A stretch of DNA of 64,000 nt, taken from positions 50,220,001 through 50,284,000 of the forward strand of contig CM069148.1 in assembly GCA_035221665.1 (NCBI GenBank), written 5' to 3'. The position numbers and the translations under genes were made by a program. Numbering within the stretch: the stretch's first letter is position 1; the number at the start of each line of letters is the position of its first letter. The stretch is from Okamejei kenojei (taxonomy: Eukaryota). Below are positions 6,587 to 57,422 of the stretch, piece after piece. Below the pieces are notes generated by a model. That model was not told the DNA's origin, did no database searches, and saw only the letters and a list, made by a program, of their open reading frames with translations.

Positions 6587-6677
6587 CTTCCTGTTTTCCT
6601 GCACTTTGATTTTCCCAGATTCTCTTTTTCCATTTTACCTTCATCAAGACTTCTTATGGTGACATCTGAATCCGGCG
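6587..6677 (-). CDS. 30-aa repeat exon type B, unit 1 (91 nt, +1 indel)
   Basis: ttaatacag|CGCCGG...CAGGAAG|gtaatg, with an extra base in a homopolymer. Confidence 0.5.
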
Positions 6678-6896
6678 CTGTATTAAAACACAAGCAAGGT
6701 GACAAAAACTGAACATGAATGCGTGGAATTCCAAAACATAAAAATTCCACATTTGTGTGAGTATTGACTGAATATTGTATATAATATTTGCAGGGATTAA
6801 CTAAATATAAATCATGTACAGTCTGCAGACAATGGCTGGACTTCAAATGTCACAGAAAGGCCAACAATACTCTGGATGCTTTGAGAAATGCCTTAC

Positions 6897-6985
6897 CTTC
6901 ACTTGCTCCTGCATTTTGGGTATCCTGCCTCTCTGTCTCCTGTTCACCTTCATCACAACTCCTGTGGCAGCGTCTGACTTGGGCT
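6897..6985 (-). CDS. 30-aa repeat exon type C, unit 1 (89 nt, -1 indel)
   Basis: tttaaatgcag|AGCCC...AGTGAAG|gtaagg, with one base missing from a homopolymer. Confidence 0.5.
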
Positions 6986-7309
6986 CTGCATTTAAACAAA
7001 AGAAAGTCTCTCAGATGTGATAATGGCAACACTACCTGAGACAAGGTATGTGAGAAGCTGGATCACACCTCGAGGAACACTATTATTCTTCCCCACAGTG
7101 AAGCCTTCATCTGCCGAAGGGATCTGTATCTCACTCCTGCAGAAAATACCTTCAACTCCTCTTCACTTTGAACCACATTTGTCTTTTGACTTTAGAGACA
7201 CAGCCCTTTGGCCCACCGAGTCCGCGCCGACCAGTGATTCACCCTGTACACTAACGCTATCCTACACATTAATGACTATTTACAATTTTTACCAAAATGC
7301 AAATTAGGA

Positions 7310-7566
7310 GTGGCACGATGGAGCAGTGGACAAGTTGTTGCCTTACAGCGCGCAGTGAGCCTGGATCGATTCTGACTATAAATGCTTTCTGTATGGAGTT
7401 TTGTACGTTCTCCCCCCGTGACCGCGTGGGTTTTCTCCAGCTGCTCTGGTTTGCTCCCGTACTCCAAAGACGTACAGGTTGGAGGTTAATTGGCTTTGGT
7501 ACAAATTGTCCCTGATGTGTAGGATAGTGCTATGTGTGGGGATCACTGGTCGGCCACGGACTGGGG
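7310..7566 (+). mobile_element. HE1-like V-SINE (also present in units 2-5 at about 12771, 18208, 23634, 29079)
   Basis: tRNA-like head gtggcacgatggagcagtgg followed by the V-domain-like core ggagtttgtacgttctcccc gtgaccgcgtgggttttctcc...tccaaagacgtacaggtt. Confidence 0.7.
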
Positions 7567-8362
7567 TAGCCTAGAATACAAGAGATATTGTGGTTGTAGC
7601 AGGAGAAAAGGAGTGGACCAGGAAGAAGCGCTGGGATCACATGACTCCCTGGAGGAGCATCGGGATGTAGGAATTACTTCAGAAGGAAATTGGAACGACT
7701 AAGAGAAAGCATGAGATCGCTTTGGCTGAGAAGATTAAGGAGAATGCAACAAGTTTTCATAGGTTATATGAAGGGGAATAGAGAATTGGATTAGTAAAGG
7801 ATGCAGAATTAGCCTGAAGTTTCATAAGTTGTGGGAGCAGAATTAGGCCATTCAGCCTATCAGATGCAGAGAGAGTGAAAGATGCAAGGAACTGTAGATG
7901 CTGGTTTACAAAAATATGGACACAAAGTGGTGGAGTAAGTGATTCAAGTAGCAGTTGTGGAAAACACGGATAGGTAATCTTTTGGGTTGGGACCTTTTTT
8001 TGAACTAGAGACCCTGTCTAGTGGTGTGCCTTCCCATTGCTGTTTGTTATCAAGATATAGGGTCTGTTTCCACACTGTATCTATGACTGTGACTATGACT
8101 ATGTGCTGTGCGGGTTTTATACACAGAGGGTGGTGGGTGACTGGGACTCGCTGCCAATGGGGTGGTGGTGGAGGCAGATACGATAATGACGTTTAAGAGA
8201 CTTCTGCATAGACACACGGATATGCTGGGAATATAGGGATATGGGTAATGTGCAGGAAGATAAGTGATGGTCTTGGCATCATGTTCAGCACAGATATTGT
8301 GGGCTGATGGGCCTGTTCCTGTGCTGTATGCTCTATGTTCTATGTTTCCGCAAAAGCATTAC

Positions 8363-8453
8363 CTTCCTGTTTTACTGCACGTGGATTTTCCAGTTTCCTT
8401 GCTTGATTTTTTATGCTCATCGGGACTTCCTGTGGTGACATCTGAATCCGGCG
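8363..8453 (-). CDS. 30-aa repeat exon type A, unit 2 (91 nt, +1 indel)
   Basis: ttaatacag|CGCCGG...CAGGAAG|gtaatg. Confidence 0.5.
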
Positions 8454-12052: not shown

Positions 12053-12143
12053 CTTCCTGTTTTCCTGCACTTTGATTTTCCAGATTCTCTTTTTTCCATT
12101 TTACCTTCATCAAGACTTCTTATGGTGACATCTGAATCCGGCG
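12053..12143 (-). CDS. 30-aa repeat exon type B, unit 2 (91 nt, +1 indel)
   Basis: Splice sites intact; extra base in a homopolymer. Confidence 0.5.
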
Positions 12144-12358
12144 CTGTATTAAAACACAGCAAGGTGACAAAAACTGAACATGAATGCGTGGAATTCCAAA
12201 CATAAAATTCCACATTTGTGAGTATTGACCTGAATATTGTATATAATATTTGCAGGGATTAACTAAATATAAATCATGTACAGTCTGCAGACAATGGCTG
12301 GACTTCAAATGTCACAGAAAGGCCAACAATACTCTGGATGCTTTGAGAAATGCCTTAC

Positions 12359-13813: not shown

Positions 13814-13904
13814 CTTCCTGTTTTACTGCACGTGGATTTTCCAGTTTCCTTGCTTGATTTTTATGCTCATTCGGGACTTCCTGTGGTGACACCTGAATCC
13901 GGCG
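13814..13904 (-). CDS. 30-aa repeat exon type A, unit 3 (91 nt, +1 indel)
   Basis: Splice sites intact; one duplicated base. Confidence 0.5.
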
Positions 13905-17490: not shown

Positions 17491-17581
17491 CTTCCTGTTT
17501 TCCTGCACTTTGATTTTCCAGATTCTCTTTTTCCATTTTACCTTCATCAAGACTTCTTATGGTGACATCTGAATCCGGGCG
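17491..17581 (-). CDS. 30-aa repeat exon type B, unit 3 (91 nt, +1 indel)
   Basis: Splice sites intact; extra base in a homopolymer. Confidence 0.5.
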
Positions 17582-19248: not shown

Positions 19249-19338
19249 CTTCCTGTTTTACTGCACGTGGATTTTCCAGTTTCCTTGCTTGATTTTTATG
19301 CTCATCGGGACTTCCTGTGGTGACACCTGAATCCGGCG
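19249..19338 (-). CDS. 30-aa repeat exon type A, unit 4 (90 nt)
   Basis: (A)PDSGVTTGSPDEHKNQARKLENPRAVKQE, flanked by cag| and |gtaatg. Confidence 0.7.
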
Positions 19339-19690: not shown

Positions 19691-21505
19691 AGATGTCCTG
19701 CTCGACCAGCTTCATGAGACCATTCATGACCTTCTCTTTTCAGGGCTACTAGTACCGGCTTTGCAGAACACTGTGATGGGGTCACATCCTCTGTCCTAGT
19801 TACCAACTTGACCTTGCCAGGCAGCCTCCCACGTCTTTCGTCATCAAAGACATCTTTGTATCTCTTGAGTAATGAGCCAGCCTCACTAACAGCATTCAGG
19901 CTCTTGAAGTTCTCATAGTGAACGTGATGAGTTTCACCTGTGGTGTAGCTTTGCCGCTCAGGAGCGGTGTGAGCCAGCCTTCCTCTACCACTATGTAGTG
20001 AACACGGTACTTCTTGTTCGTCTCGTTCCGGAGTATGACTTTGGTCCTACCTTGCGCCAGCAGGTTGGATCTGTTGTACATCTTTAAGATGATTTTCTCT
20101 CATCTAATGTCCTCTTTGTTGGGTACAAGATCCTTGGGTATCACATTAACACTGGCACCAGAGTCAATTTGAAATTTGATGGGTGCTGTGCCGACCTGCA
20201 TCTCAGCGAATAGGCCTGAAGAGGAATTGCTTCCAGCTGCATTGATCTCAATGCAACTCACAGACTCTGTCGGAAGTGGGCGTGTCAGATGTCTCTACGA
20301 CCTTGTGCAGACACCGTTTCTGCGAGCTCTCCTTCCTCTACTTGCAGCAGCAGGCGAAGTGGTTTTGACGTCCGCATCTGTTGCAGACCTTCCCATATGC
20401 TGGGCATTCCTCCTTCCTATGCTTGTGAATCCTTGCACAGAACTTACACTTGACTAGTCCCTGATTCTTCCTCTGCAAAGGAAAATCAATCATCTTTCCC
20501 CTCGGTTTGAATCGTTCCACCTTGTGTATTGTCGGCTCTTCGCCGATGACCTGCATTCTTGCTGCTGTTACCTCCGAGGATCTACATATGTCCACAGTTC
20601 CCTGCAGTGTCAGATTCCTCTTCTGAAGGAGTGTCTTCCTAGTTGACTGGTCCTCAATACCAATGACGATGCGATCTCAAATGAGCCTTTCTCTCAGGCA
20701 ATCACAGAAGTTGCATGTTTTAGCAAGCTCCTTCAGCTCTGCAACTCATGATTTATTGCTTTCCCCTGATTTCTGGTCTCGTTTATTGATAATGAATCTT
20801 TCATACGTTTCATTCGTCTCTCCTATGATGATGGTTGACATCTTGTCGATGATGACTTTCACATCCGTCTCATCTGTTACCGTTTTGAATGTCAGGGTAT
20901 TGATGATTCACACACCTTCTGGCCCAACAGAATGCAGGAATACTGCTTTTTGATACTGTTTCTCTTTCTTATCCACTTCTATTATCACTTCATAATTGTC
21001 ATGCATTCGTTTAAACATTTTCCACTCTTCCATCCTGTTCTCTTTGAGCTTTTTGGAGCCACGTAGAAAGATGGACTGGTCTGCGCCATTTTGAACTATC
21101 AGCATATTCCCTCTCTCTTAATAGCTTATTTTATCTTTAAGCAGTCTCCCACAGCACGTCATTTTACACTTCGACTCCCACAGCACTGATTTACACGCAG
21201 CGTCTTATCTTTGTGTGTTCACTGACCAGCATCCACTCATGCATGCAGCTAGTCCGGTCACTGAGTGTTGAAACACTGAAACACAAATCTTCACTTTCAC
21301 TGCTGCCACCATATTTTGATATTTGTCTGCTTACAAAATAAGTAAACTAGCATATAATATACAGAGAAAGATGGTTGCACACACACTCATGTTGGGATCA
21401 AAAGCAGGTATGATTTATTTCCAAGTCAAGGGTCACTGACTGACTTACTGAGCATTTGCGATAATGAGTACAGCTCATACGCATAATTAAATGGATATTG
21501 TCACA
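19691..21505 (-). mobile_element. Ty3/Gypsy fragment, unit 4
   Basis: Copy of 3367-5178. Confidence 0.85.
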
Positions 21506-22918: not shown

Positions 22919-23008
22919 CTTCCTGTTTTCCTGCACTTTGATTTTCCAGATTCTCTTTTTCCATTTTACCTTCATCAAGACTTCTTATGGTGACATCTGA
23001 ATCCGGCG
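22919..23008 (-). CDS. 30-aa repeat exon type B, unit 4 (90 nt)
   Basis: (A)PDSDVTIRSLDEGKMEKENLENQSAGKQE, flanked by cag| and |gtaatg. Confidence 0.7.
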
Positions 23009-23313: not shown

Positions 23314-24675
23314 CTGCATTTAAACAAAAGAAAGTCTCTCAGATGTGATAATGGCAACACTGCCTGAGACAAGGTATGTGAGAAGCTGGATCACACCTCG
23401 AGGAACACTATTATTCTTCCCCACAGTGAAGCCTTCATCTGCCGAAGGATCTGTATCTCACTCCTGCAGAAAATACCTTCAACTCCTCTTCACTTTGAAC
23501 CACATTTGTCTTTTGACTTTAGAGACACAGCCCTTTGGCCCACCGAGTCCGCGCCGACCAGTGATCACCCTGTACACTAACGCTATCCTACACATTAATG
23601 ACTATTTACAATTTTACCAAATGCAAATTAGGAGTGGCACGATGGAGCAGTGGACAAGTTGTTGCCTTACAGCGCCAGTGAGCCTGGATCGATTCTGACT
23701 ATAAATGCTTTCTGTATGGAGTTTGTACGTTCTCTCCCGTGACCGCGTGGGTTTTCTCCAGCTGCTCTGGTTTGCTCCCGTACTCCAAAGACGTACAGGT
23801 TGGAGGTTAATTGGCTTTGGTACAAATTGTCCCTGATGTGTAGGATAGTGCTATGTGTGGGGATCACTGGTCGGCACGGACTGGGGTAGCCTAGAATACA
23901 AGAGATATTGTGGTTGTAGCAGGAGAAAAGGAGTGGACCAGGAAGAAGCGCTGGGATCACATGACTCCCTGGAGGAGCATCGGGATGTAGGAATTACTTC
24001 AGAAGGAAATTGGAACGACTAAGAGAAAGCATGAGATCGCTTTGGCTGAGAAGATTAAGGAGAATGCAACAAGTTTTCATAGGTATATGAAGGGGAATAG
24101 AGAATTGGATTAGTAAAGGATGCAGAATTAGCCTGAAGTTCATAAGTTGTGGGAGCAGAATTAGGCCATTCAGCCTATCAGATGCAGAGAGTGAAAGATA
24201 CAAGGAACTGTAGATGCTGGTTTACAAAAATATGGACACAAAGTGGTGGAGTAAGTGATTCAAGTAGCAGTTGTGGAAAACACGGATAGGTAATCTTTTG
24301 GGGTGGGACCTTTTTTGAACTAGAGACCCTGTCTAGTGGTGTGCCTCCCATTGCTGTTTGTTATCAAGGTATAGGGTCTGTTTCCACACTGTATCTATGA
24401 CTGTGACTATGACTATGTGCTGTGCGGGTTTTATACACAGAGGGTGGTGGGTGACTGGGACTCGCTGCCAGGGGTGGTGGTGGAGGCAGATACGATAATG
24501 ACGTTTAAGAGACTTCTGCATAGACACACGGATATGCTGGGAATATAGGGATATGGGTAATGTGCAGGAAGATAAGTGATGGTCTTGGCATCATGTTCAG
24601 CACAGATATTGTGGGCTGAAGGGCCTGTTCCTGTGCTGTACTGCTCTATGTTCTATGTTTCCGCAAAAGCATTAC

Positions 24676-24765
24676 CTTCCTGTTTTACTGCACGTGGATT
24701 TTCCAGTTTCCTTGCTTGATTTTTATGCTCATCGGGACTTCCTGTGGTGACATCTGAATCCGGCG
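24676..24765 (-). CDS. 30-aa repeat exon type A, unit 5 (90 nt)
   Basis: (A)PDSDVTTGSPDEHKNQARKLENPRAVKQE, flanked by cag| and |gtaatg. Confidence 0.7.
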
Positions 24766-25117
24766 CTGTATTAAAATACAAGAAGGTCTCACATGTAATG
24801 ATGCCAACGCTGCCTGAGATAAGGTATCCCAACACTTTCGGGAAGCTGGATCACAGGACTCGAACTTTTGTAGTTTCCCACCAATATTTTAAGAGCACAA
24901 AAGAGAAGCCTTAACCTGACTAAAGATCTACATGTTGCTGCTGCAAAAGTTACGTACAATTGTTATTTAGTTAAATACATCACTATTGACATCAAATTTC
25001 ATCTGATCCGTACCTGCTGTAAGCCAAATGTTTAATGGACTTCAGAATGAACGAAACAATTCGGCAAGTGCACTTAGAGTCATAGACTCATAGAGCGATA
25101 CAGCGTGGAAACAGGCC

Positions 25118-26933
25118 AGATGTCCTGCTCGACCAGCTTCATGAGACCATTCATGACCTTCTCTTTCAGGGCTACTGGTACCGGCTTTGCAGAACACTGT
25201 GATGGGGTCACATCCTCTGTCCTAGTTACCAACTTGACCTTGCCAGGCAGCCTCCCACGTCTTTCGTCATCAAAGACATCTTTGTATCTCTTGATTAATG
25301 AGCCAGCCTCACTAACAGCATTCAGGCTCTTGAAGTTCTCATAGTGAACGTGATGAGTTTCACCTGTGGTGTAGCTTTGCCGCTCAGGAGCGGTGTGAGC
25401 CAGCCGTCCTCTACCACTATGTAGTGAACACGGTACTTCTTGTTGTTCGTCTCGTTCCGGAGTATGACTTTGGTCCCCTTGCGCCAGCAGGTTGGATCTG
25501 TTGTACATCTTTAAGATGATTTTGTCTCATCTAATGTCCTCTTTGTTGGGTACAAGATCCTTGGGAATCACATTAACACTGGCACCAGAGTCAATTTGAA
25601 ATTTGATGGGTGCTGTGCCAACCTGCATCTCAGCGAATAGGCCTGAAGAGGAATTGCTTCCAGCTGCATTGATCTCAATGTAACTCACAGACTCTGTCGG
25701 AAGTGGGCGTGTCAGATGTCTCTACGACCTTGTGCAGACACCGTTTCTGCGAGCTCTCCTTCCTCTACTTGCAGTAGCAGGCGAAGTGGTTTTGACGTCC
25801 GCATCTGTTGCAGACCTTCCCATATACTGGGCATTCCTCCTTCCTACGCTTGTGCATCCTTGCACAGAACCTACACTTGACTAGTCCCTGATTCTTCCTC
25901 TGCAAAGGAAAATCAATCATCTTTCCCCTCGGTTTTAATCGTTCCACCTTGTGTATTGTCGGTTCTTCGCCGATGACCTGCATTCTTGCCGCTGTTACCT
26001 CCGAGGATCTACATATGTCCACAGTCCCCTGCAGTGTCAGATTCCTCTTCTGAAGGAGTGTCTTCCTAGTTGACTGGTCCTGAATACCAATGACGATGCG
26101 ATCTCAAATGAGCCTTTCTCTCAGGCAATCACAGAAGTTGCATGTTTTAGCAAGCTCCTTCAGCTCTGCAACTCATGATTTATTGCTTTCCCCTGATTTC
26201 TGGTCTCGTTTATTGAAAATGAATCTTTCATACGTTTCATTCGTCTCTCCTATGATGATGGTTGACATCTTGTCGATGATGACTTTCACATCCGTCTCAT
26301 CTGTTACCGTTTTGAATGTCAGGGTATTGATGATTCACACACCTTCTGGCCCAACAGAATGCAGGAATACTGCTTTTTGATACTGTTTCTCTTTCTTATC
26401 CACTTCTATTATCACTTCATAATTGTCATGCATTCGTTTAAACATTTTCCACTCTTCCACCCTGTTCTCTTTGAGCTTTTTGCAGCCACGTGGAAAGATG
26501 GACTGGTCTGCGCCATTTTGAACTATCAGCATATTCCTTTTCTCTTAATAGCTTATTTCATCTTTAAGCAGTCTCCCACAGCACGTCATTTTACACTTCG
26601 ACTCCCACAGCACTGATTTACACGCAGCGTCTTATCTTTGTGTGTTCACTGACCAGCATCCACTCATGCATGCAGCTAGTCCGGTCACTGAGTGTTGAAA
26701 CACTGAAACACAAATCTTCACTTTCACTGCTGCCACCATATTTTGATATTTGTCTGCTTACAAAATAAGTAAACTAGCATATAATATACAGAGAAAGATG
26801 GCTGCACACACACTCATGTTGGGATCAAAAGCAGGTATGATTTATTTCCAAGTCAAGGGTCACTGACTGACTTACTGAGCATTTGCGATAATGAGTACAG
26901 CTCATACGCATAAATTAAATGGATATTGTCACA
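25118..26933 (-). mobile_element. Ty3/Gypsy fragment, unit 5
   Basis: Copy of 3367-5178. Confidence 0.85.
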
Positions 26934-28362
26934 ATATCCCTCCAAACCTGTCCATGTACCTGTCGAACAGTTTCTTAAATTTTGTGATAGTCCCCATCTT
27001 CACTACCTCCTCTGGCAGCTTGTTCCATACAGCCACTACCCTCTGTGTAAAAATGTTATCTCTCAGATCTTTTCCCTTTCACCTTAAACCTATGTCCTCT
27101 GGTTCTCGATACACCTAATCTGGGCAAGAGACTCTGTGCATCTACCCGATTTATTCCTCTCATGATCCTATACACCTCTGTAAGATCACCCATCATCCTC
27201 CTGCACTTCAAGGAATAGGAGTACTCAACCTCTCCCTGTAGCTCACACCCTCTAGTCCTGGCAACATCCTCTAAATCTTCTCTGCACCCTTTCCAGCTTG
27301 TCAACATATTTCCTGTAACATGGTGCTAGAACTGAGCACAGTACACCAAATGTGGTCGCACCAATGTCTTATACAACTGCATCATGACATCGCAACTTAT
27401 ACACTCAATACCCTGGCTGATGAAGGCCAATGTGCCAAAAGTATTTTGACCACCCAACCTACCTGCGACCACTTTGAATGAACTAAGCACCTGCACTCCT
27501 AGATCCTTCTGCTCCACAACACTCCCCAGAGCCCTACCATTCACTGTGTAGGTCCTGCCACATTAGACTTCCCAAAAAGCAACACCTCACATTTCTCTGC
27601 ATTAAATTCCATCAATCAATCTTTAGCCCATCGGAACAATCGATCAAGATTCTGCTGCAATTTTTCACAACCTACTTCACCATCTGCAAAACCACCCACA
27701 TTTGTATCATCTGCAAAGTTGTGAATCTTGCCATCTAAGTTTTCATCCAAATCACTTTTGTGAGTCTGTGGAATTCACTGCCTCAGGGCGATGGAGGCCA
27801 TGGATACTTTCAAGAGAGAGCTAGATAGGCCTCTTAAAGTTAGCAGTCAGAGATATGTGGAGAAGCAGGAACGGGGCACTGATTGTGGATGATCAGCCAT
27901 GATCACATTGAATGGCTTGAAGGGCCGAATGGCCTCCTCTTGCACCTAGTGTCTATTGTCTACCAGGCAGAAATACAATCAAGTCAAACTCAAGTACAAT
28001 AGATGGAACAAAGGGGAAGATACCGAATGCAGAATATCGTTCTATACTGACAGGAAGAAAATAAGATTTAAAAGATCTGTACTTGCCGGGAGAACAAAGG
28101 AATGTAAAGGGCAAAGGGCACAATGAGCAACAACTGAATTTGAATATGTGGTTTTCCACATAGAAAATCTGACATATATGTGAATTTTCCTGATAGGCAT
28201 ATAAAATTGAAATTACGAATATGCTGGGAATGGAGGGATATGGGTTATGTGCAGAAAACTAATTGATGGTCTTGGCGTTACATTCAGCCCAGACATTGTG
28301 GGCTGAATGGCCTGTTCCTGTGCTGTACTGTTCCATGTGCGATATTTCAGCAAAAGCATTAC

Positions 28363-28452
28363 CTTCCTGTTTTCCTGCACTTTGATTTTCCAGATTCTCT
28401 TTTTCCATTTTACCTTCATCAAGACTTCTTATGGTGACATCTGAATCCGGCG
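28363..28452 (-). CDS. 30-aa repeat exon type B, unit 5 (90 nt)
   Basis: (A)PDSDVTIRSLDEGKMEKENLENQSAGKQE, flanked by cag| and |gtaatg. Confidence 0.7.
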
Positions 28453-28668
28453 CTGTATTAAAACACAGCAAGATGACAAAAACTGAACATGAATGCGTGG
28501 AATTCCAAACATAAAATTCCACATATGTGAGTATTGACCTGAATATTGTATATAATATATTTCAGGGATTAACTAAATATAAATCATGTACAGTCTGCAG
28601 ACAATGGCTGGACTTCAAATGTCACAGAAAGGCCAACAATACTCTGGATGCTTTGAGAAATGCCTTAC

Positions 28669-28758
28669 CTTCACTTGCTTCTGCATTTTGGGTATCCTGC
28701 CTCTCTGTCTCCTGTTCACCTTCATCACAACTCCCTGTGGCAGCGTCTGACTTGGGCA
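28669..28758 (-). CDS. 30-aa repeat exon type C, unit 5 (90 nt)
   Basis: (V)PKSDAATGSCDEGEQETERQDTQNAEASE, flanked by cag| and |gtaagg. Confidence 0.7.
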
Positions 28759-29851
28759 CTGCATTTAAACAAAAGAAAGTCTCTCAGATGTGATAATGGC
28801 AACACTGCCTGAGACAAGGTATGTGAGAAGCTGGATCACACCTCGAGGAACACTATTATTCTTCCCCACAGTGAAGCCTTCATCTGCCGAAGGATCTGTA
28901 TCTCACTCCTGCAGAAAATACCTTCAACTCCTCTTCACTTTGAACCACATTTGTCTTTTGACTTTAGAGACACAGCCCTTTGGCCCACCGAGTCCGCGCC
29001 GACCAGTGATCACCCTGTACACTAACGCTATCCTACACATTAATGACTATTTACAATTTTACCAAATGCAAATTAGGAGTGGCACGATGGAGCAGTGGAC
29101 AAGTTGTTGCCTTACAGCGCCAGTGAGCCTGGATCGATTCTGACTATAGATGCTGTCTGTATGGAGTTTGTACGTTCACCCCGTGACCGCGTGGGTTTTC
29201 TCCAGCTGCTCTGGTTTGCTCCCGTACTCCAAAGACGTACAGGTTGGAGGTTAATTGGCTTTGGTACAAATTGTCCCTGATGTGTAGGATAGTGCTATGT
29301 ATGGGGATCACTGGTCGGCACGGACTGGGGTAGCCTAGAATACAAGAGATATTGTGGTTGTAGCAGGAGAAAAGGAGTGGACCAGGAAGAAGCACTGGGA
29401 TCACATGACTCCCTGGAGGAGCATCGGGATGTAGGAATTACTTCAGAAGGAAATTGGAACGACTAAGAGAAAGCATGAGATCGCTTTGGCTGAGAAGATT
29501 AAGGAGAATGCAACAAGTTTTTATAGGTATATGAAGGAGAATAGAGAATTGGATTAGTAAAGGATGCAGAATTAGCCTGAAGTTCATAAGTTGTGGGAGC
29601 AGAATTAGGCCATTCAGCCTATCTGATGCAGAGAGTGAAAGATACAAGGAACTGTAGATGCTGGTTTACAAAAATATGGACACAAAGTGGTGGAGTAAGG
29701 GATTCAAGTAGCATTTGTGGAAAACACGGATAGGTAATCTTTTGGGTTGGGACCTTTTTTGGACTAGAGACCCTGTCTAGTGGTGTGCCTCCCATTGCTG
29801 TTTGTTATCAATGATTTAGATGAGAATGTACAAGGCATTATTAGATATTAC

Positions 29852-30251
29852 CTGAGGTAACTTTGAGTACTGTAGTATGCATTTCAGACCAAGTGGCGTC
29901 TGGAGTGTTTGATTTGTGTTCAATATCGATCTGAGCAGCATCGTCCGTGGATAAATTAGGCTGCACCTTAATACAGCAGTGAATGTATGAATAACCTGTA
30001 TCTGCAGTTTGTAATTCAGGCTGATCTGCGGAGAAGGATTTATCTGGATTGCATGAATTCAGTATAGTTAGAGGTTGTGTCACCCTTTTTGGTCCCTGCA
30101 ATTGTTCTGCTGACAATTGCCAGTGAAATAATGTAATTGTTTTCCGCTCTCTCCTCTTCAGTGATATAACATTATCCATTGGCACCAGAGTAGTCATGGT
30201 CACATCCCAGCTCACATCAGCAGTTTCACCATGTACGACTTCATACTGATT
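29852..30251 (-). pseudogene. Ig-like (C1-like) exon, 3' part, separated from its 5' part by the DIRS insertion
   Basis: Open frame NQYEVVHGETADVSWDVTM...LKRRERKTITLFHW...HCCIKVQPNLSTDDAAQIDIEHKS...VLKVTS, ending at a phase-1 donor TCAG|gtaata. Confidence 0.65.
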
Positions 30252-30447
30252 TTACTTCGGAGTAACGTGAGTGACTACGTGAATAGAAGCCCGTACATCC
30301 GTTGGTGCGTCATGACGTCAGACGTTGGTGCAGTCGGCCGGTTGGAGCAGCAGCGCTCCTCCAAGCGGTAAGTTTAAACGGAGGTAAGGTTTTTTAAAAT
30401 TTTTTACCACAGGTCATTTTCTGTGACGGTTTGGAGTTCTTGGAGAT

Positions 30448-31681
30448 ATGTTGCAGAAAGTGAAGAAGGTGTCGGCGAGGCGCTCCGGGGGTAGAAAGGA
30501 AAGTGGCCAGGAGAGTGTTGAGGATGAAGGCCCGTCTGGTACACCTGGTCCGGTGCTGGCTACACAGCCAGTGGTTGCGGACCCACTGCCGGGGGGCAGT
30601 GGAGGCTTGCCAGTAGGGCGGAAGGCCACTGGCAAGTCTCTGTGGCCCGTAGATGAGTCGGGCCTGGAGGTTATACCCTCCATAGGAGAGTCCGTTTGCT
30701 CACGGCTCTCCCACGTCGAGATTTTATTACAAAAGAATGCTCGACAGGGACCAGCTCCGTGAGGAGGAGTGGTGCCCAAGCCAGGCTGATGGAGAGCTTG
30801 TGCTAGCAGCACCTGTTTCAGGGCTGCAGAACTATCCTGCCTGTGAGGAGGATGTTCTATCACTGCAGTTTGCTGACACTGATTCTATGCTGGGGGAGAG
30901 CAGTAAAGAAGTTCGGTTGGAGGTAATTCCGAACATTGCTGGGAAGTTTGCTCAGCCTAGAGAGGCAGGAGAGGCGATTGATGGGGAATTGGCTGAAGCC
31001 ATTCAGTATATGCTCCCCCACCAGTTACAGGAGTTAGCTATGGATGAAGCAGCAAAAAACTATAAAGCTCCTGTTAATTGTGATCTCCTGAAGGTACCAG
31101 TGGTTAATCACCAAATTTGGTCACAGATGGGTATGCCTGCTAGGGCTCATTAGATGAAGTTCCAAAAAGTGCTTAAACTGTTGTCAGCAGGTATTACAGC
31201 TGTGGGGAAAGTGATTGATCCAAGCAATGTGGTTGAAGCACACCAGGACGGACTGGGATTCCTTTGTAATGCGTTTTTTGAAATAAATAACATCAGGAGG
31301 GCCGCTATTAGGCCAGTGCTTAATCCGAATTTGGCAAGTTTGTGCAAACCAACCAGTGTACCACCACAAAATCTGTTGCTTGCGAAAAGGGTCAAAGAAT
31401 GTCATGAAGATGTTAAAACTATGGCCCTCATTAAGCCGGCTGGTAAGCAGGGCAAAAGGTTTTCTCCGTATTGGAAAGGAACTAATGTGGATGCAGGAGA
31501 AGGAACGAGCCGTTCAGGTCTTCAATTTCGGAACTGGCAGGCTGCCAGCATGAAGGGGAAGGTGCCTTTCTCCACAAGAGGTCGAGGACAACAAGGTCCG
31601 CAAGGAAAGATGCAGGTAAGGAATATAACATTGATAGACGATGAATTAACTGATGTTCCTGTTCAAATTGGGGAAGGTTAA
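30448..31681 (+). pseudogene. DIRS gag-like ORF (frameshift and TAG at 31151)
   Basis: PVNCDLLKVPVVNHQIW and EINNIRRAAIRPVLNP, located upstream of RT. Confidence 0.75.
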
Positions 31682-31683
31682 AA

Positions 31684-33060
31684 TTGTTTCTCAAACAATG
31701 GCAGCAGTTGACATCAGATTTGTTCATACTTAGTAGTATTGAAGGGGTGAAAAATGAATTTTACTCTAAGGACAGTCTACCTAATCAACATTTTCCTAGT
31801 CGTAAACTTATTTTTTCAGATGAGGAAAATGTGCTTGTTCAAGCAGAGATTCAGTCGTTACATAAGAAAGGGGTAATTGAGCCTTCTGTCTATCAAAGTC
31901 AACAATTTCTGTCAAGTATATTTCCCAGATCTAAAAAGACTGGGGGATGTAGAATTATTCTGGATTTATCGAGTTTGAACAAATTTGTTTGTTATAGGTA
32001 TTTCAAAATGGAGACCTTTACCACGGGCAAACATCTAGTGTCCAAAGGGTATTATATGGCAACCATTGATTTAAAGAATGTGTATTACTCAGTGTCTATT
32101 CATGGTGATGATAGAAGATATTTGAAATTTATTTGGATGACTGAGCTGTGGCAATTCAGGGCATTGCCGAATGGATTAACTTCAGCTCCTAGATTATTTA
32201 CTAAATTGGTAAAACCTGTGTTAGCATTACTTAGAGCTCAGGGGCATGTGGTAATGGCCTATTTAGATGATATTCTGATTGTTGGAAAGACTCATGCTGA
32301 AACTCAATCATCAGTTTTCAGTTATTAAAATCACTTTTGAACAAATGGGATTTGTTATTCACCCAGATAAATCTAAATTATCACCAGTCCAAATTATTGA
32401 TTATCTGGGATTTACCATTAATTCCAATCACATGTTGGTAACTTTGCCCAGGGATAAATTGAATCAGTTAATTGAGGACTGTGTTAATCTCGTTGGAGAA
32501 CAACGGCCTTCGATTAGACAAGTAGCCAGTTTAATTGGGAAGTTTGTTGCAGCATTTCCAGCTGTGCAGTATGGTCCTCTGCATTATCAACAATTACAAA
32601 GATCAAAGGAACAGGCACTGAGAATACAAAGGGGCCATTTTGATAGGCCTATGCAGTTGTCAGCTGGGGCGATTGCTGACATACAATGGCGGATAGTACA
32701 TGTTTCAAAAAGTTTAGGAATGTTTTGGTGGAACCACCGTCACTGATATTACAGACTGATGTAAGTGCACTGGGTTGGGGTGCAACAGATATGTCTTCTA
32801 GTTGTGGAGGCAGATGGAATGTGGATGAGACATCGCTTCTTCAATTAAGAAGGATTAATTATTTAGAGTTGTTGGGCACCTGGTATGGGCTCAAAGCTTA
32901 TTGTTCTACAAGCAGGGACTTGCATGTGCAGGTCCAGATTGACAACACCACAGCAGTGGCATATGTAAACCACATGGGTGGAGTTAAGTCACAGCCTTGT
33001 GATAGACTGGCTAACCAGATTTGGAGCTGGTGTATTGACTAAAATATCTGGCTTTCAGCA
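31684..33060 (+). pseudogene. DIRS reverse transcriptase / RNase H (frameshifted)
   Basis: RIILDLSSLNKF, IDLKNVYYSV, LPNGLTSAPRLFTK, YLDDIL; RNase H motifs TDVSALGWG, INYLEL, DNTTAVAYVNHMGG. Confidence 0.92.
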
Positions 33061-33543
33061 CTTTGTTTGCCAGGAAGATTCAACACTGTAGCTGACACTA
33101 GGTCACGTCAGTTTAATAACAACATTGAATGGATGTTAAATCAGGATATATTTAACCAAATGATTGTTGAGTATGGATTGCCAGATATTGACTTGTTTGC
33201 ATCTTGATTAAATCATCAGTTACCTAGATATGTTTCATGGGAACCAGATTCTGGGGCAGTAGCAGTGGATGCGTTTTCGCTGCATTGGGGAGGAATGTTT
33301 GTGTATGTATTTCCTCCATTCTGTCTCATCAGCAGATGTTTGCAAAAGATCAAGGAGGACTCCGCTTCAGGGGTATTGGTAGTGCCAGATTGGCCTACAC
33401 AAGCATGGTTTCCTGTTGTATTACAAATGGCTAGAGAGCCTTACATGATTATTCCCAAGAATAAAAATCTACTGGTAAATCCATTCACTGGGGATCAACA
33501 TCCTTTACATGATCGTATTGATCTGTTAATTTGCAGATTTTAA
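33061..33543 (+). pseudogene. DIRS N6-adenine methyltransferase-like domain
   Basis: IDLFAS*LNHQLPRYVSW...DAFSLHW...YVFPPF...VVPDWPTQAWFP. Confidence 0.85.
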
Positions 33544-34571
33544 GGAGGCCATACCTGGGGAGAGGACTGTCTCATCGGACTGTGGATGTTCTCACATTGG
33601 CCTGCAGGGATAGTACACAGCAGCAATATATCACCTATATAAGGAAGTGGGAGCAATTCTGCCTACAGCAGAATATTGTATATCACACTGCAGGGATCAC
33701 GGACGTATTGGAGTTTTGTCAACTCTTTATTTCGGCCAAAAATTAAGTTACAGTGCGATTAATTCAGCCAGAAGTGCTCTGTCTTCTTATTTACCTATGA
33801 ATGCAGAATTGCATACAGTAGGGACACATCCGTTAGTTTCACGATTCATGAAGGGAGTTTTCAATTCTAATCCTCCTAAACCCAGGTATGCCGGTATTTG
33901 GAATGTGGGTGAGGTTCTTATGGTTCTTCGCCAGTGGGCTCCGGTTACAAGCCTATCTATAGCCAAATTAACTATGAAGGTGGTCATGCTTATGGCGTTG
34001 GTTTCAGCTCAACGTGTACAAACGTTGCAAAAGCTACGGCTAGATATAATGCATGTGTCGGCAGATGCCATTATATTTTATGTCTATGATTTGCTTAAAC
34101 ATAATAGAAGGCATGACAGGATGTAAGATTGTGTTTTCAGCATACCCCGCAGATGGTCACTTGTGTGTAGTCTCACATTTATCTCGTTACATTGAGATTA
34201 CTAAACCTCTGAGAGGAACAGAGTTGGCTTTGTTTATTAGTCACAAAAAAACACACAGTAAGGTGTCGGTGCAAACGATTTCAAGGTGGCTAAAGCAGGT
34301 CCTGGCAAGTTCAGGAATTGATACTGATAAATTCAAATCTCATTCCACCAGGGTGGCATCAACTTCCGCGGCAAGGGCGATGGACTTGCCAATAGACCAT
34401 ATCCTCGCGGCCGCAGGATGGTCCAGTGAGCTAACTTTTCAGAGGTTTTATCACAAGCCGATTTCAAGGCTCGGGGTGTTTGCTGATTCTGTTTTCAGTA
34501 CTGTTATAGTTTCCCCTGAGTTAGAGGGGTTTGTTATGATTTTGGTTGTAAATAAACTGTTATTCGTTTAA
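33531..34571 (+). pseudogene. DIRS tyrosine recombinase (frameshifted)
   Basis: SAQRVQTL, HSTRVASTS and AAGWSSELTFQRFY supply the catalytic R...HxxR...W...Y residues. Confidence 0.92.
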
Positions 34572-34677
34572 CAAATGTTATTATTGATGCATGATTGATT
34601 GCTAACGACTTTGAGTCAATCCAGACAGTGTGAACGTCGGATTTGGGTCTGCGGCGTGAATTCATAGTGCTTTGAAG

Positions 34678-34790
34678 TATTCACGTAGTCACTCACGTGA
34701 CTCTGAAGTAAAATAGTAAGATTAAACGAGAACTTACCAGTTTGAAGTTTGATCTTTATTTTATGAGGAGTCGAGTTGAGGGACTACGTG
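34678..34790. repeat. DIRS internal complementary region (ICR)
   Basis: Reverse complement of the left end (30249-30285) fused to the reverse complement of the right end (34930-35008). Confidence 0.9.
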
Positions 34791-35008
34791 AATAGAAGCC
34801 CGTACAGCCGTTGGTGCGTCAATCTTCAAAGCAGCGGAATGAATTCACAGCTAACAATGACTGAAGTATAATGGTAAGATGATAAAACTAGAACTACCAG
34901 ATGAGATCTATGAGGGTGGGAGCGGAGGGCACGTAGTCCCTCAACTCGACTCCTCATAAAATAAAGATCAAACTTCAAACTGGTAAGTTCTCGTTTGATC
35001 TTACTATT

Positions 35009-35035
35009 CTTCATCTCACTAATTGCAGGAGGTGA
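35009..35035 (-). pseudogene. Ig-like exon, 5' stub (PPAISEMK)
   Basis: Follows a pyrimidine tract and joins 30251 in frame when the DIRS is removed. No suitable AG acceptor is present. Confidence 0.55.
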
Positions 35036-43933: not shown

Positions 43934-43997
43934 CTTCCCATTTTCCTGCACTTTGATTTTCCAGATTCATTGCATCCCTTTCACCCTCATTGGGACC
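43934..43997 (-). pseudogene. Decayed 30-aa repeat exon (fourth type)
   Basis: GPNEGERDAMNLENQSAGKWE, homologous to type B. The donor is mutated (GAAG|ttaatgctttt) and the 5' end is replaced by a CR1 3' tail. Confidence 0.65.
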
Positions 43998-44462
43998 AAT
44001 GTAGCTGGGACGTGTTGGCCGGTGTGGGCAAGGTGGGCCGAAGGGCCTGTTTCCAAGTTGTATCACTGTATGACTCTTTCATTATGAATGGCCAAGATCT
44101 ACAACCTATGACTTTATGAACATGGAGAAAACCCATACAGACAGCACCCGTGGGTTTGTGCTAATGTTTCTAAACTTAGTTTAAAACTTCATCTAATTGT
44201 GTATGTTGTGTGAAGAATAGGAATCTTGTATTCGATATAATGAATCACTATAATCAATTACCTCGTGCAGTTTGTGAGCCCGTCTTGGCGATAAGTGGTG
44301 TACGGTTTGGGTCTTCAATGTCCGTTGTATTTACCTGTCCTGAACAACATAAACAAGACAATTAGACAGAAAACAAGCTGACCAAGTGCCAGTTTAAAAA
44401 GTATAAAAATACACAGATCAATTCCAGCTTTCTGGATAATATATCTTTCTCTGGAACACCAG

Positions 44463-44585: not shown

Positions 44586-44642
<57 letters not shown>

Positions 44643-49375: not shown

Positions 49376-49765
49376 NNNNNNNNNNNNNNNNNNNNNNNNN
49401 NNNNNNNNNNNNNNNNNNNNNNNNNNNNNNNNNNNNNNNNNNNNNNNNNNNNNNNNNNNNNNNNNNNNNNNNNNNNNNNNNNNNNNNNNNNNNNNNNNNN
49501 NNNNNNNNNNNNNNNNNNNNNNNNNNNNNNNNNNNNNNNNNNNNNNNNNNNNNNNNNNNNNNNNNNNNNNNNNNNNNNNNNNNNNNNNNNNNNNNNNNNN
49601 NNNNNNNNNNNNNNNNNNNNNNNNNNNNNNNNNNNNNNNNNNNNNNNNNNNNNNNNNNNNNNNNNNNNNNNNNNNNNNNNNNNNNNNNNNNNNNNNNNNN
49701 NNNNNNNNNNNNNNNNNNNNNNNNNNNNNNNNNNNNNNNNNNNNNNNNNNNNNNNNNNNNNNNNN
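49376..49765. other. Assembly gap
   Basis: Run of N. Confidence 1.
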
Positions 49766-49817
49766 CAATACTAGTGCAATAATAACAATAACCATCTATT
49801 GTAGTTCAGAGTTTTAA

Positions 49818-50675: not shown

Positions 50676-50777
50676 CTTTACATTTCTTCTTCCAGGTACA
50701 AATTGCTATGCACACAACACATAGGAATATGCAGATGCCACAGATGCCTCCAATAATCAGCCCAATTTTTCCATGTT
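50676..50777 (-). CDS. NCR3LG1-like: B7-H6-like gene, transmembrane exon (102 nt, phase 1-1)
   Basis: gtctgttttaacag|AA CAT GGA...TGT AAA G|gtaaac, encoding (E)HGKIGLIIGGICGICIFLCVVCIAICTWKKKCK: a hydrophobic helix plus a basic stop-transfer. Missed by the ORF track. Confidence 0.88.
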
Positions 50778-51600: not shown

Positions 51601-51947
51601 GGTTCTGTACTTAACTGGTACCCATTGTGTTTATCTCCCAGGTGTAAAACAGCTGCAGCATTTAAGATTCCAAGGATTATACATATCATCACCATGATGC
51701 AGATTATAATTAAAGTGTAATTTGATTTCTGGATGTTGTCAATTAAAAAAAATATAAAATTGCACAGACTTTGAATAAAAGAAGCAATAGATTGACTTAA
51801 ATGTTCAGGAATGTTAATAATCCTTGATTTGATGAATTGAATTGAATTGAATTGAGAGATTGAATTGATTGAACGGACCCTAAAGCCCACTAAGACCATG
51901 CTGACATTGATCATGTGTTCACACTAGTTCTATGTTTCTATCCCACT

Positions 51948-52458
51948 TTAAATGGTGGCCGATTAGGAAAAGGGGAGATGCAGCGAGACCTGGGTGTCAT
52001 GGTACACCAGTCATTGAAAGTAGGCATGCAGGTGCAGCAGGCAGTGAAAAAAGCGAATGGTATGTTAGCTTTCATAGCAAAAGGATTTGAGTACAGGAGC
52101 ACGGAGGTTCTACTTCAGTTGTACAGGGTCTTGGTGAGACCACACCTGGAGTCACAGCTTAAGGATAAGGGGGAAATCCTTTAAGACCGAGATGAGAAAG
52201 ACTTTTTTCACACAGAGAGTGGTGAGTCTCTGGAACTCTCTGCCACAGAGGGTAGTTGAGGCCAGTTCATTGGCTATATTTAAGAGTGAGTTGGATGTGG
52301 CCCTTGTGGCTAAGGGGATCAGAGGGTATGGAGAGAAGGCAGGTACGGGATACTGAGTTGGATGATCAGCCATGATCATATTGAATGGCGGTGCAGGCTC
52401 GAAGGGCTGAATGGCCTACTCCTGCACCTAATTTCTATGTTTCTATGTTTCTATGTTT
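51948..52458 (+). mobile_element. Young CR1 3' fragment with internal deletion
   Basis: LNGGRLGKGEMQRDLGV...RPHLE joined to the 3' end, with a (tttctatg)n tail. Confidence 0.88.
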
Positions 52459-53577: not shown

Positions 53578-53892
53578 CTGGCACGGTGAGAGAAGTTTCT
53601 ATTATGAAACCATTCAGGAACGTTTGATGTCTCACTACGCATCTGTATTCATCACCATTATTGTTCAATGTCGGGTGAATCTTCAGTTCACTCTCAGCAT
53701 TGAAAGTGCGATCACCATTGGCCGTGATTTGAGTTGTATAGTTATTCATAGAAACACTTCTTCTTCCTGTTATCTTCACCCAGGTGATGTTTATGAGTCG
53801 AGGATAAAATCCATTGGCTTTGCATGTCAGAGAACCTTCTGGACCTTTCTCATTTGTGATGGACTGTGTCGCTATACTAACGTTTGGTCGAG
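53578..53892 (-). CDS. NCR3LG1-like: B7-H6-like gene, IgC1 exon (315 nt, phase 1-1)
   Basis: ttttaatgcag|CT CGA CCA...GTG CCA G|gtgagt, encoding ARPNVSI...LTCKANGFYPRLINITW...NGDRTFNAESEL...YRCVVRHQTF (canonical C1-set motifs). Confidence 0.93.
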
Positions 53893-55045
53893 CTGCATTA
53901 AAAAAATGTACATTTAAATATTAGAGGAAGAGACTGCAGGTGCTGGAGATAGAAAACAAAAGCAGACAACACTGGAAGCACTAAGTAGGTCCAAAAACAT
54001 TGTCAGGGAATAGAACAGGGCCATTTCTTCAGGCTGGGGTATCTTAATCAGAGTTAGGAATGTTAGAACCATTAGCATCTGAAGACATCAATATGTTAAA
54101 GTAGGCACATGGTGTGCTTGCATTCATTGGTTGGGGCATTGAGTAGGAAGTCATGACTCAGCTTCATAGGACTTTGTTTTACCTGTATTTAGACTGTTGT
54201 GGGCAGTTCAGTTTAGTTTATTATCACATGTAATGAGGTACATAAAATGCTTTGGGTGCGTGGTAAGACAAAACATGATTACAATCAAACCATTCACAGT
54301 GTACAGATGCATGATAAGGGAATTACGCTTAGTGCAAAATAAAACCAGTAAAGTCTGATTAAAGATAGTCCAAAGGTCATGAATGAAGTAGATAGTAGTT
54401 CAGGACTACTCTCTACTTGTGGTAGGATGGTTCTGCTGCCTGTTAATAGCTGGGAAGAAACTGTCCCTAAATCTGGAGGTGTGCGTTTTCACACTTCTGG
54501 TCACCCCATTACAGGAAGGGTCTGGATGCTTTGGAGAGAGTGCAGAGGAGGTTTACCGGAATGGATGGATTAGAGGGCAATAGCTACAGGGAGAGTTTGG
54601 ACAGACTTGGATTGTTTTCTCTGGAATGCCGGAGGTAGTAGAAAGACCTGATTGATGTATATCAAATTATGAGAGGCGCAGGTAGGGAAGACAGTTAGAA
54701 CCATTTTCCCAGGATGAAAATATCAAATACTTGAATCTGCTGCTTTATGGTGAGAGGAGCAAAGTTTAAAGGAGATGTGTAGGTGAGTTTTTTTTACACA
54801 GAGGGTGGTAGATGCCTGGAAAGCACTTTAACAGGGGTGGTGGTGGAGGCAGATACGATAGTGATATTTAGGAGACTTTTTGATAGGCACATCCAAAAAC
54901 ACCCCCTACAACTCCCACCAACTTCTGCAGATGCACCGTGGGAAGCATTTTATCGCCTTGTTTGGGAACAGCTGGAACCAAGACCGCACGATATTGCAGC
55001 GAATTGTGGACACAACTCAGACCATCACACAAACCAACCTCCCTT

Positions 55046-55340
55046 NNNNNNNNNNNNNNNNNNNNNNNNNNNNNNNNNNNNNNNNNNNNNNNNNNNNNNN
55101 NNNNNNNNNNNNNNNNNNNNNNNNNNNNNNNNNNNNNNNNNNNNNNNNNNNNNNNNNNNNNNNNNNNNNNNNNNNNNNNNNNNNNNNNNNNNNNNNNNNN
55201 NNNNNNNNNNNNNNNNNNNNNNNNNNNNNNNNNNNNNNNNNNNNNNNNNNNNNNNNNNNNNNNNNNNNNNNNNNNNNNNNNNNNNNNNNNNNNNNNNNNN
55301 NNNNNNNNNNNNNNNNNNNNNNNNNNNNNNNNNNNNNNNN
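55046..55340. other. Assembly gap
   Basis: Run of N. Confidence 1.
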
Positions 55341-56990
55341 ATCTCAGTTTTAACTGGCCTCCCCTTTATTCTTAGACTGTGGCCCCTGGTTCTGGGCTCC
55401 ATTGGGAACATTTTACTGCTATCCAGATGCGTTGTTATTACTTCTTTCATAATTGACTCCAGCATCTTCCCCACCACTGATGTCAGGCTAACTGGTCTAT
55501 AATTCCCCATTTTCTCTCTGGCTCCTTTTTTGAAAAGTGGGATAACATTAGCTTCCACAGGAACTGATCCTGAATCCATAGAACATTGGAATATGATCAC
55601 CAATGCGTCCACGATTTCTAGAGCTACTTCTTGAGTACCCTGGGATGCAGACCATCAGGCCCTGGGGATTTATCATCCTTCAGTCCCATCAGTCTACCCA
55701 ATACTATTTCTCACCTAATGCAAATTTCTTTCAGTTTCTCTGTCTCCCTAAATCCTCTGTCCTCTGGTACATCTGGGAGATTGTTTGTGTGTTCCTTAGT
55801 GAAGACAGAACCAAAGTACCTGTTCAACTCTTCAGCCATTTCCTTGTTCCCCTTAATAATTTCACCCGTGTCTGCCTTCAAGGGACCCACATTTGTCTTT
55901 ATTAATCTTTTTCTCTTAACTAAAGAACCTTTTATTATCCCTCGTTATATTCTTGACCAGCTTACCCTCGTACTTCATCCTTTCACCCCTTTTTGTTACC
56001 TTCTGTTGTCCTTTGAAAGTTTCCCAAACCTCTGGCCTCCTGCCACTCTTTGCTGTGTTATACACCTTTTCCTTTAGTTTTATTCCATCCCGAACTTCCC
56101 TTGTCACCACGGTTGCCTCTTACTTCCCTTAGAATCTTTCTTCCTCTTTGGAATGAAATGATCCTGCATCTTCTGGATTATGCCCAGAAATTCCACCATC
56201 ATTCCTGCTTGAATCCTTTTCCAGTCGACCTTAGCCAGCTCCTCTCTTTGTTCAAATGCAACACTGACACTTCTGATTTAAGCTTCTCCCTCTCAAATTG
56301 CAGATTAAAACTTATCATATTATGGTTACAACCTCCTAGCGCTTCCTTTACCTCAAGTACACTTATTAAATCTGGTTCATAAGACAACACCAAATCCAGA
56401 ATTGCCTTCTCTCTGGTACAAGCTGCTCTAAGAATCCATCTCGGAGGCACTCCACAAACTCCCTTGTTTGGGTCCAGAACCAACCTGATTTTCCCAGTCT
56501 ACCTGCATATTGAAATCTCCCATAACCACAACAGTGGCATTACCTTTGTTACATGCCAATTTTATGTCCTGCTGCAACTTGCACCCTATATCCAGGCTAC
56601 TGTTTGGGGGCCTGTGAATAACTCCCATTAGTGTCGTCTTACCTTTACAATTCCTCAATTCTATCCACAGCGACTCTACATCGTCAGTCCCTATGTCACC
56701 CCTTGCAAGGGACAGAATTTCATCCCTCACCAACAGAGCTACCCCACCTCCTCTGCCCACCTGCCTGTCCTTTCTATAGGACATATAACCCTGAATATTC
56801 AGTTCCCAGTCCCGATCCTCCTGCAGTCTCTGTAATCCCCACAATGTCATATCTACCACCCCCCTCCCCCCCCCCATTATTTAGTTTAAACCCACCCGGT
56901 TAGCAGTGACAAACCTGTCTGCCAGAATGGTGGTTCCCCAGTCTGTGCAACCCGTCCCTTTTGTACAATTCACCCTTATCCCAAAGCAGA
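55341..56990 (-). mobile_element. CR1 ORF2 fragment (endonuclease and start of RT)
   Basis: [48 protein letters not shown]. Confidence 0.9.
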
Positions 56991-57089
56991 TCCCAGTGGT
57001 CTAAGAATCTAAATCCCTGTTCATCCTTGTTTCAAACTTCCAAACCATTTCCTTGGAATTATATTCCTGAATGTTATTGTTAATCTTAC

Positions 57090-57422
57090 CTAACACTTGC
57101 ATTGTTGAAAAGCGACTGAGACTTTCAGGGACGATAAACACAGTGCACGTGTACATTCCTTCGTCAGAGATCTGGACTTTTGGAAGATGAATTGAAGCGT
57201 TTCCCTTCAGTAATTCAGCCTCAGAAATATTGGCACCAGATCGATATCGCTCTTTAGTTCCTCCTTCAAAGGAAAACACTTCTGTTTTCTCATTAAGGGT
57301 CCATATGACTGCCATCTTTTTTAAGTCAATGTTTCCAGACCCAGTAACCATGCATTTCAGAGTCACATTGTCATTTACAAATACCATCAGTGGATTTGCA
57401 AATATCTCCATCTCAAAGGTAT
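57090..57422 (-). CDS. NCR3LG1-like: B7-H6-like gene, IgV exon (333 nt, phase 1-1)
   Basis: tttttttag|AT ACC TTT...GTG TTA G|gtaaga, encoding NVTLKC...AVIW...YRSGANISEAELLKGNASIHLPKVQISDEGMYTCTVFIVP. The V-set motifs and the RxGA and CxVxxxP features resemble B7-H6; TAPBP/SIRP-like relatives are not excluded. Confidence 0.9.

Follow-up and report, generated by a model that had tools for sequence, protein, structure and literature searches.

Does the B7-H6-like gene of a skate, whose immunoglobulin (Ig) V, IgC1 and transmembrane (TM) exons can be read on one strand, run on through an array of short repeated exons to encode a receptor with a modular tail, or do these repeated exons belong to something else? 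This question is raised by a stretch of 64,000 nucleotides (nt) from Okamejei kenojei (contig CM069148.1 of GenBank assembly GCA_035221665.1, positions 50,220,001 to 50,284,000 of the forward strand), referred to here as the window, in which the candidate exons span more than 50 kb. An original prediction, made from the letters of the window alone, had proposed a B7-H6/NCR3LG1-like protein of the form V-C1-TM-(30aa)n. The explanation that we favour, at a probability of roughly two in three, is that the window carries most of one gene of a cartilaginous-fish B7-H6 (NCR3LG1)-like expansion, in which the tail is encoded by a modular and amplified set of cassette exons. Whatever its tail, the locus is a real immune-type surface-protein gene of the skate, with IgV, IgC1 and membrane exons.

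All three of these exons read on the minus strand and stand exactly where they had been predicted. The IgV exon (57090..57422) matches the Pfam V-set family at 1.7e-8, the IgC1 exon (53578..53892) matches the C1-set family at 1.3e-13, and the TM exon (50676..50777) encodes a hydrophobic core followed by WKKKCK. Each is an open frame between AG and GT borders in phase 1-1, which bears out the in-frame splicing proposed for them: the frame opens at the third base of each exon with one base left over, the acceptors are pyrimidine-rich and close on AG, the donors read GTAAG, GTGAG and GTAAA, and the junction codons are GCT (Ala) between V and C1 and GAA (Glu) between C1 and TM. The V and C1 exons were each searched separately against Pfam, against the PDB and with HMMER. 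Among solved structures B7-H6 is the top single-domain match of both, over one stretch in each case (49.6 bits, 3.2e-12 for V; 47.7 bits, 1.7e-11 for C1), the higher scores of CD276 for V (75.5 bits, 2.8e-20) and of UrIg2 for C1 (53.2 bits, 3.2e-13) being spread over two stretches, and a single V domain of CD276 scoring 41.6 bits. Furthermore, the V exon is 51% identical to the V domain of a short-tailed basking shark protein of 273 residues that carries the NCBI name NCR3LG1-like. By sequence comparison the ectodomain is B7-H6-like and may be closer to B7-H6 than to other B7 members, and both the structural matches and the basking shark homologue support the original prediction on this point. 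A single-pass type I anchor follows C1, as represented by the TM core with its KKK cluster and by the homologous segment of a Rhinoraja longicauda protein (XP_078271721), which is modelled as a helix and whose TM end is 74% identical to the TM exon over 19 residues. As the TM exon is itself in phase 1-1, the frame would survive its skipping.

The same Rhinoraja protein, an NCBI model of 691 residues, carries the argument from the Ig exons into the tail. When it was compared with the window by tblastn, its matches took in the V, C1 and TM exons, a 78-nt exon, a relic module, a further domain exon and the repeated modules, which share a strand and largely keep the order of the model; the relic is the sole exception, its counterpart in XP_078271721 sitting after the domain. 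The V domain is 43% identical to that of the Rhinoraja model, as against 60-80% for the tail. The 78-nt juxtamembrane exon (44262..44339, minus strand, phase 1-1), located by a splice and phase scan, is 70% identical to residues 266-292 of XP_078271721, which directly follow its TM segment, and the codon formed at the junction of the TM and 78-nt exons is GGA (Gly), the same Gly that follows KCK in the Rhinoraja model. Between TM and the array we found no other gene start, the interval holding only open reading frames of retroelements. The original prediction had linked the repeat exons to the V-C1-TM gene by strand and phase alone; given the colinearity with XP_078271721 and the lack of another gene start this is no longer so, and its concern that the modules might splice to a different upstream gene finds no candidate in this interval.

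The design is also not confined to Rhinoraja. A HMMER search with the V exon alone returned many proteins of 500-1500 residues with one N-terminal V domain, and V-C1-TM followed by a long repetitive tail is present in NCBI models of at least seven cartilaginous fishes, namely Rhinoraja, Mobula, Hemitrygon, Scyliorhinus, Chiloscyllium (isoform X18), Heterodontus and Callorhinchus (isoform X7). A hidden Markov model of the modules found the same types in Rhinoraja and Leucoraja, and neither the tail exons nor the tails of the relatives matched any Pfam family. In the AlphaFold model of XP_078271721 the V and C1 domains, the TM helix and a domain after it are confident, and the module region (residues 503-691) has a predicted local distance difference test score (pLDDT) of about 30. 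The architecture, unfamiliar when the original prediction was made, is therefore already in public databases, though as unnamed models. When the short-tailed basking shark protein was used for a word-index search, four proteins only were returned; no skate protein was among them, and the window encodes none of the four. We found no published description of such tails in a search that missed key papers on B7-H6 evolution, so that one may already exist; as far as we have searched, the same design exists in unnamed database models of other sharks and rays and is apparently undescribed.

The tail exons themselves lie in a tandem array (2982..~29480) with a period of about 5.44 kb and about 4.9 units, each unit carrying B, C and A modules in that order together with retroelement debris; C5 and A5 are extra at the top, and the last, partial unit has its B module deleted. 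Fourteen modules of the three types were identified with a profile that was built from the candidate exons, all on the minus strand and with near-identical canonical splice sites. Eight of them are exactly 90 nt long and in phase 1-1: C5 (28669..28758), A5 (28363..28452), B4 (24676..24765), C4 (23224..23313), A4 (22919..23008), B3 (19249..19338), C3 (17798..17887) and C2 (12359..12448), with the 29 full codons of C4 matching a Leucoraja module exactly. The other six are 91 or 89 nt long through a one-base change in a mononucleotide run: A3 (17491..17581) has one extra C in a run of C, B2 (13814..13904) one extra A, A2 (12053..12143) and B1 (8363..8453) a run of six A in place of five, A1 (6587..6677) one extra G, and the C module of unit 1 (6897..6985) one base missing. 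The claim of same-strand, phase-1 repeat exons accordingly holds for the strand of all fourteen and for the phase of eight, the remaining six being frame-broken by a single base.

These six changes are probably assembly errors, as suggested by the way in which the units differ from each other. Substitutions leave the units 99.1-99.7% identical, and of the 57 columns with a single-base indel in the alignment of units U1 to U4, 53 fall in runs of at least two bases. U1 has 29 private insertions and U2 has 15, against 9 and 7 private substitutions, whereas U4, with 37 substitutions and one indel, presents a natural pattern. As an insertion excess of this kind is typical of an unpolished long-read consensus, we regard the six frameshifts as probably erroneous and the copy number as an approximation. 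The array is a recent amplification in tandem. In each unit the modules are accompanied by fragments of a long terminal repeat (LTR) retroelement on the minus strand, at 20100-20600 and its equivalents, comprising gag with a CCHC knuckle and protease with a DSGA motif; besides the gag zinc knuckle and protease motif, the debris includes the tail of a long or short interspersed element (LINE or SINE) directly after the A and B donors. Because the modules and these fragments multiplied together, the block that was duplicated represents an older intron laden with transposable elements (TEs) plus its exons. Since the module copies arose by duplication, only the A, B and C types and the 78-nt exon count as partly independent evidence for the phase rule. 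The modules are acidic (6-8 of 29 residues), rich in Ser and Thr and without aromatic residues, which are likewise absent from the 78-nt exon, and they are predicted to be disordered.

Evidence for the use of such exons as cassettes comes from two relatives. The Leucoraja erinacea locus LOC129705962, found by a search with the Rhinoraja module region, has isoforms X1-X8 that are built of the A, B and C types as well; they are set apart by deletions of whole exons, 30, 30, 38, 45, 68 and 98 residues long. In Heterodontus, isoform X2 is without one 26-residue module and isoform X3 is without exactly the 31-residue TM segment. Differences by whole modules are the pattern that all-phase-1 exons predict. 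With these models, the proposed V-C1-TM-(30aa)n and the free combination of its phase-1 exons are supported in part, in the architecture of the relatives and in the isoforms of Leucoraja and Heterodontus respectively; what has to be given up is the direct joining of TM to the modules, as the 78-nt exon and an Ig-like domain exon, the latter broken in the window, stand between them. The TM-less XP_067902349 of Heterodontus francisci would itself be secreted, its V-C1 part carrying seven Ig-like domains and an acidic tail.

We propose the following model for this gene. The gene would encode a type I membrane protein with an IgV and an IgC1 domain, one TM helix, a short juxtamembrane exon and a long tail built of cassettes. 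As every exon is in phase 1-1, any subset of them, including those without TM, keeps the frame. The mRNA of the copy in the window would likely join V, C1, TM and the 78-nt exon, and then the modules. Tandem duplication of a 5.44-kb block, holding three types of 30-codon module and retroelement debris, would have brought the modules to 14, and the length and charge of the tail would be set at two levels, by the number of modules in the gene through tandem duplication and by the number included in each mRNA through cassette splicing. The resulting variable, disordered tail would be cytoplasmic in the membrane form; skipping of the TM exon would place the same tail as a C-terminal extension on a secreted V-C1 protein. 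Transcription of this copy through the array, and the topology and function of its tail, are what we infer. Any constraint on the modules would concern their openness and composition, not their individual residues.

The exon that should lead from the juxtamembrane segment into the modules is knocked out in this copy by the loss of an AG and by the insertion of a DIRS-like retroelement. The first 26 nt of this post-TM domain exon lie at 35006..35031 on the minus strand, where the acceptor is lost, a good pyrimidine tract being followed by CAC where CAG is expected. The DIRS-like element (30252..35005, plus strand; reverse transcriptase 1.5e-12, tyrosine recombinase 1.1e-5) amounts to 4754 nt with AAT on either side, and the remaining 400 nt of the exon (29852..30251, minus strand) end in phase 1 and are 78.5% identical to residues 363-497 of XP_078271721. 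Once the insert is removed the length of the exon stays in frame, with or without AAT. The Rhinoraja model suggests that a 93-nt module might begin at an internal acceptor of the domain exon, but this reading was rejected for the window, which has no AG there. The relic of an A-like module (43935..43997, minus strand) is likewise dead, its 5' half having been replaced by repeat sequence and its donor GT now reading TT. Genomic contigs of a relative, described below, extend no more than 3 nt beyond 30251, a limit that would fit with that relative carrying the DIRS-like insertion too. Some 250 nt before the 78-nt exon's acceptor, on its upstream side, stands an unbroken run of 55 G on the plus strand (44587-44641; poly-C in the direction of the gene), which may be genuine or an artefact of assembly.

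The post-TM domain, which relatives carry, is of interest as a fold. It has no Pfam match, and AlphaFold models it with a pLDDT of 88 as an Ig-like beta sandwich, and its best Foldseek matches are Ig domains of the V type (Nav beta4, T-cell receptor V and myelin P0) with query-normalised TM-scores (TMq) of 0.52-0.60; an iterated profile makes weak contact with C1 domains too. It is thus predicted to be an Ig-like sandwich of the V type. In an alignment of 19 sequences one proline is invariant and no cysteine is invariant or nearly so. The domain, of about 135 residues, has a strong match in about 30 of the 150 best relatives of the V exon, reaches up to seven copies in the horn shark, and is directly preceded by a hydrophobic segment in nearly all carriers checked. 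Whether cytoplasmic in a B7-type protein or part of a secreted form from which TM is skipped, such an Ig-like fold merits a study of its own.

Several observations weigh against a single gene with a productive modular tail. The supporting proteins are automatic gene models in which transcript support is not visible, and those of the closest annotated relative, LOC129705962, are tail-only, starting inside the domain exon and lacking V-C1-TM. No RNA of this species was found among the sequencing runs examined. The four best runs on 24650-30300 are genomic contigs of a relative that is about 5-6% diverged, and these run through the exon-intron borders with no joint at a predicted splice site; the other candidate runs (shares of 0.14 and 0.07-0.08) match only a 512-nt fragment of a young LINE at 51947-52458 and not the exons, and it is this fragment that makes many runs appear to hold the C1-TM stretch. 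Both ends of the gene are also missing from the window: two scans of 57423-64000 gave nothing credible as a leader exon, only LINE copies and a 28-nt minisatellite, and nothing on the minus strand of the window credibly matches the C-terminal peptides of the Leucoraja and Rhinoraja models, by which the last exon would be marked. To these must be added the dead domain exon and dead relic of this copy, the six modules that are out of frame as assembled, and the absence of any signal of residue-level constraint among A, B and C, whose ratios of nonsynonymous to synonymous substitution (dN/dS) are 2.25, 0.84 and 0.69 over 87 nt, values that we do not read as below 1.

The latter points would be accommodated if the window held a decaying copy, in which V-C1-TM may be expressed with a short tail and the array has arisen by neutral tandem duplication of intron-like, TE-rich DNA with relic exons that are no longer productively spliced. 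Loss of the domain exon to the missing AG and the retroelement, the TT donor of the relic, the frameshifts, a dN/dS of about 1 or higher and units made mostly of retroelement debris are all as such decay would have them, and read-through of the TM donor would meet a stop after seven codons, giving a short tail of the kind known from the 273-residue relatives. Decay does not, however, lead one to expect eight intact modules with perfect acceptors, donors and open frames, nor the intact V, C1, TM and 78-nt exons upstream of them. Moreover, the one-base changes bear the signature of consensus error and not of mutation, and the A, B and C types are kept open and used in the Leucoraja and Rhinoraja models. 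In the relative's contigs B4, C5 and the domain exon are without frame-breaking changes, the indels of the domain exon being of +6 and +3 nt. We consider a decaying copy unlikely on balance.

The modules could instead form a separate transcription unit with its own start, for example in or near the retroelement or the domain exon, and encode an acidic, tail-only protein unlinked to V-C1-TM. All eight Leucoraja isoforms do start at a Met in the 3' part of the domain exon, Pfam recognises neither an Ig nor a TM domain in them, and in the window the insertion cuts the domain exon off from the exons upstream. Against this, the Rhinoraja model joins V-C1-TM to the same exons, annotation pipelines report a tail-only frame when the frame upstream is broken, and the stretch between TM and the array holds no other gene start, its frames being those of retroelements; a wholly disordered acidic protein without a signal would also be an odd product. 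This alternative we hold to be distinctly improbable. An assembly artefact in the copy number of the array or in its adjacency to the Ig gene, for which the two N gaps between V and the array, units at least 99% identical and an error-like excess of one-base insertions could be invoked, is very improbable, given that the unique array-side exons (78-nt and domain) follow TM in the Rhinoraja model, that the units differ by graded private substitutions, 37 of them in U4, and that the relative's contigs cover unique parts of the array.

The two gaps deserve attention for another reason, as the first doubt raised with the original prediction was that an exon hidden in the gap at 49376-49765 might end the transcript soon after TM. 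That gap falls within the intron that follows TM, with 910 nt separating it from TM and 5036 nt from the exon beyond; the other, at 55046-55340, falls within the V-C1 intron and is 1749 nt away from V and 1153 nt away from C1. Both are intronic and no exon abuts them, the nearest exon edge being 910 nt away. As homologous proteins read straight across both gap-spanning junctions without additional residues, no hidden exon is required; an optional cassette exon might still lie within a gap. At the window ends, the minisatellite (57584-58059; 28-nt units, a higher-order period of 153 nt and 92% matches) lies directly upstream of the V exon in what is presumed to be the leader-V intron. Beyond the end of the array, 1-2980 is G-rich, with 57% GC and short tandem repeats at 473-534 and 899-1004, and we found no module, last exon or recognisable gene there. 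Near-identical copies of a LINE 3' end, 99.4-99.5% identical to each other, occur at 51947-52458, 59463-59770, 61584-61891, 61126-61331 and 61985-62190, and the family to which they belong is, on this identity, very young and probably active.

If one gene with a modular tail is the right explanation for the window, it may be a member of something wider. We put forward tentatively, at somewhat less than even odds, that there is a lineage-wide and undescribed class of B7-H6-like genes in cartilaginous fishes in which everything after C1 is a frame-neutral kit of cassettes, made up of the TM exon, Ig-like domains poor in disulfides and disordered acidic modules that are 26-30 residues long. A single gene of this class could yield both membrane-bound and secreted V-C1 proteins with many tail lengths, and module number would evolve fast by duplication of multi-kilobase blocks. 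This would give a family of natural killer (NK) cell ligands a new axis of diversification, located in the tail and not in the binding domain. The pairing of B7-H6 with NKp30 is one of the oldest between an NK receptor and its ligand, and from sharks to mammals the numbers of the two genes vary together. Should the ligands of sharks and rays indeed carry long, combinatorially spliced tails, signalling or sorting on the ligand side, or soluble release, would have been much more elaborate near the root of the jawed vertebrates than it is in mammals. The locus would furthermore be a clean natural example of the lengthening of a protein by tandem duplication of phase-matched exons. The exon map given here makes the question testable, with the six frameshifts of the array flagged as probable assembly errors.

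How far this gene departs from known systems is best seen against human B7-H6 (NCR3LG1), the ligand of NKp30, which has the same ectodomain of IgV and IgC1 and a single TM helix. Phase-1 domain exons are usual in genes of the Ig superfamily, B7-H6 among them. The tail of human B7-H6 is a single gag-like region with tyrosine-based motifs, whereas that of the skate is a chain of acidic, tyrosine-free cassette exons of 30 codons, to which the relatives add Ig-like domains after TM; a gag-like tail with tyrosine motifs was looked for in the skate and not found, the tail exons matching no Pfam family and the modules and 78-nt exon having no aromatic residues. The closest likeness is to the unnamed models XP_078271721 (Rhinoraja), LOC129705962 (Leucoraja), XP_067902347-52 (Heterodontus) and XP_043561701 (Chiloscyllium), which have the same exon types in broadly the same order; XP_043561701 is labelled 'ribosome-binding protein 1-like isoform X18', such models otherwise being called 'uncharacterized'. 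The window differs from them in its broken domain exon and in having its modules in a young 5.44-kb tandem array with 14 copies. In genes of the butyrophilin and PECAM-1 type the cytoplasmic region is likewise composed of several short exons, which are alternatively spliced in PECAM-1, so that an Ig-superfamily tail made from many short exons has a parallel there; those exons, however, do not form near-identical tandem repeats, do not vary in number and lead into a defined signalling domain or motif such as B30.2 or an immunoreceptor tyrosine-based inhibitory motif (ITIM). A parallel for the manner of growth is provided by UrIg2, which is also the best PDB match of the skate C1 exon (over two stretches). 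This shark gene of the Ig superfamily was enlarged by recent tandem duplication of adjacent exons (PMC12227049). The repeats of UrIg2 are extracellular C1 domains before TM (PMC12227049), whereas those of the skate would be disordered modules placed after it.

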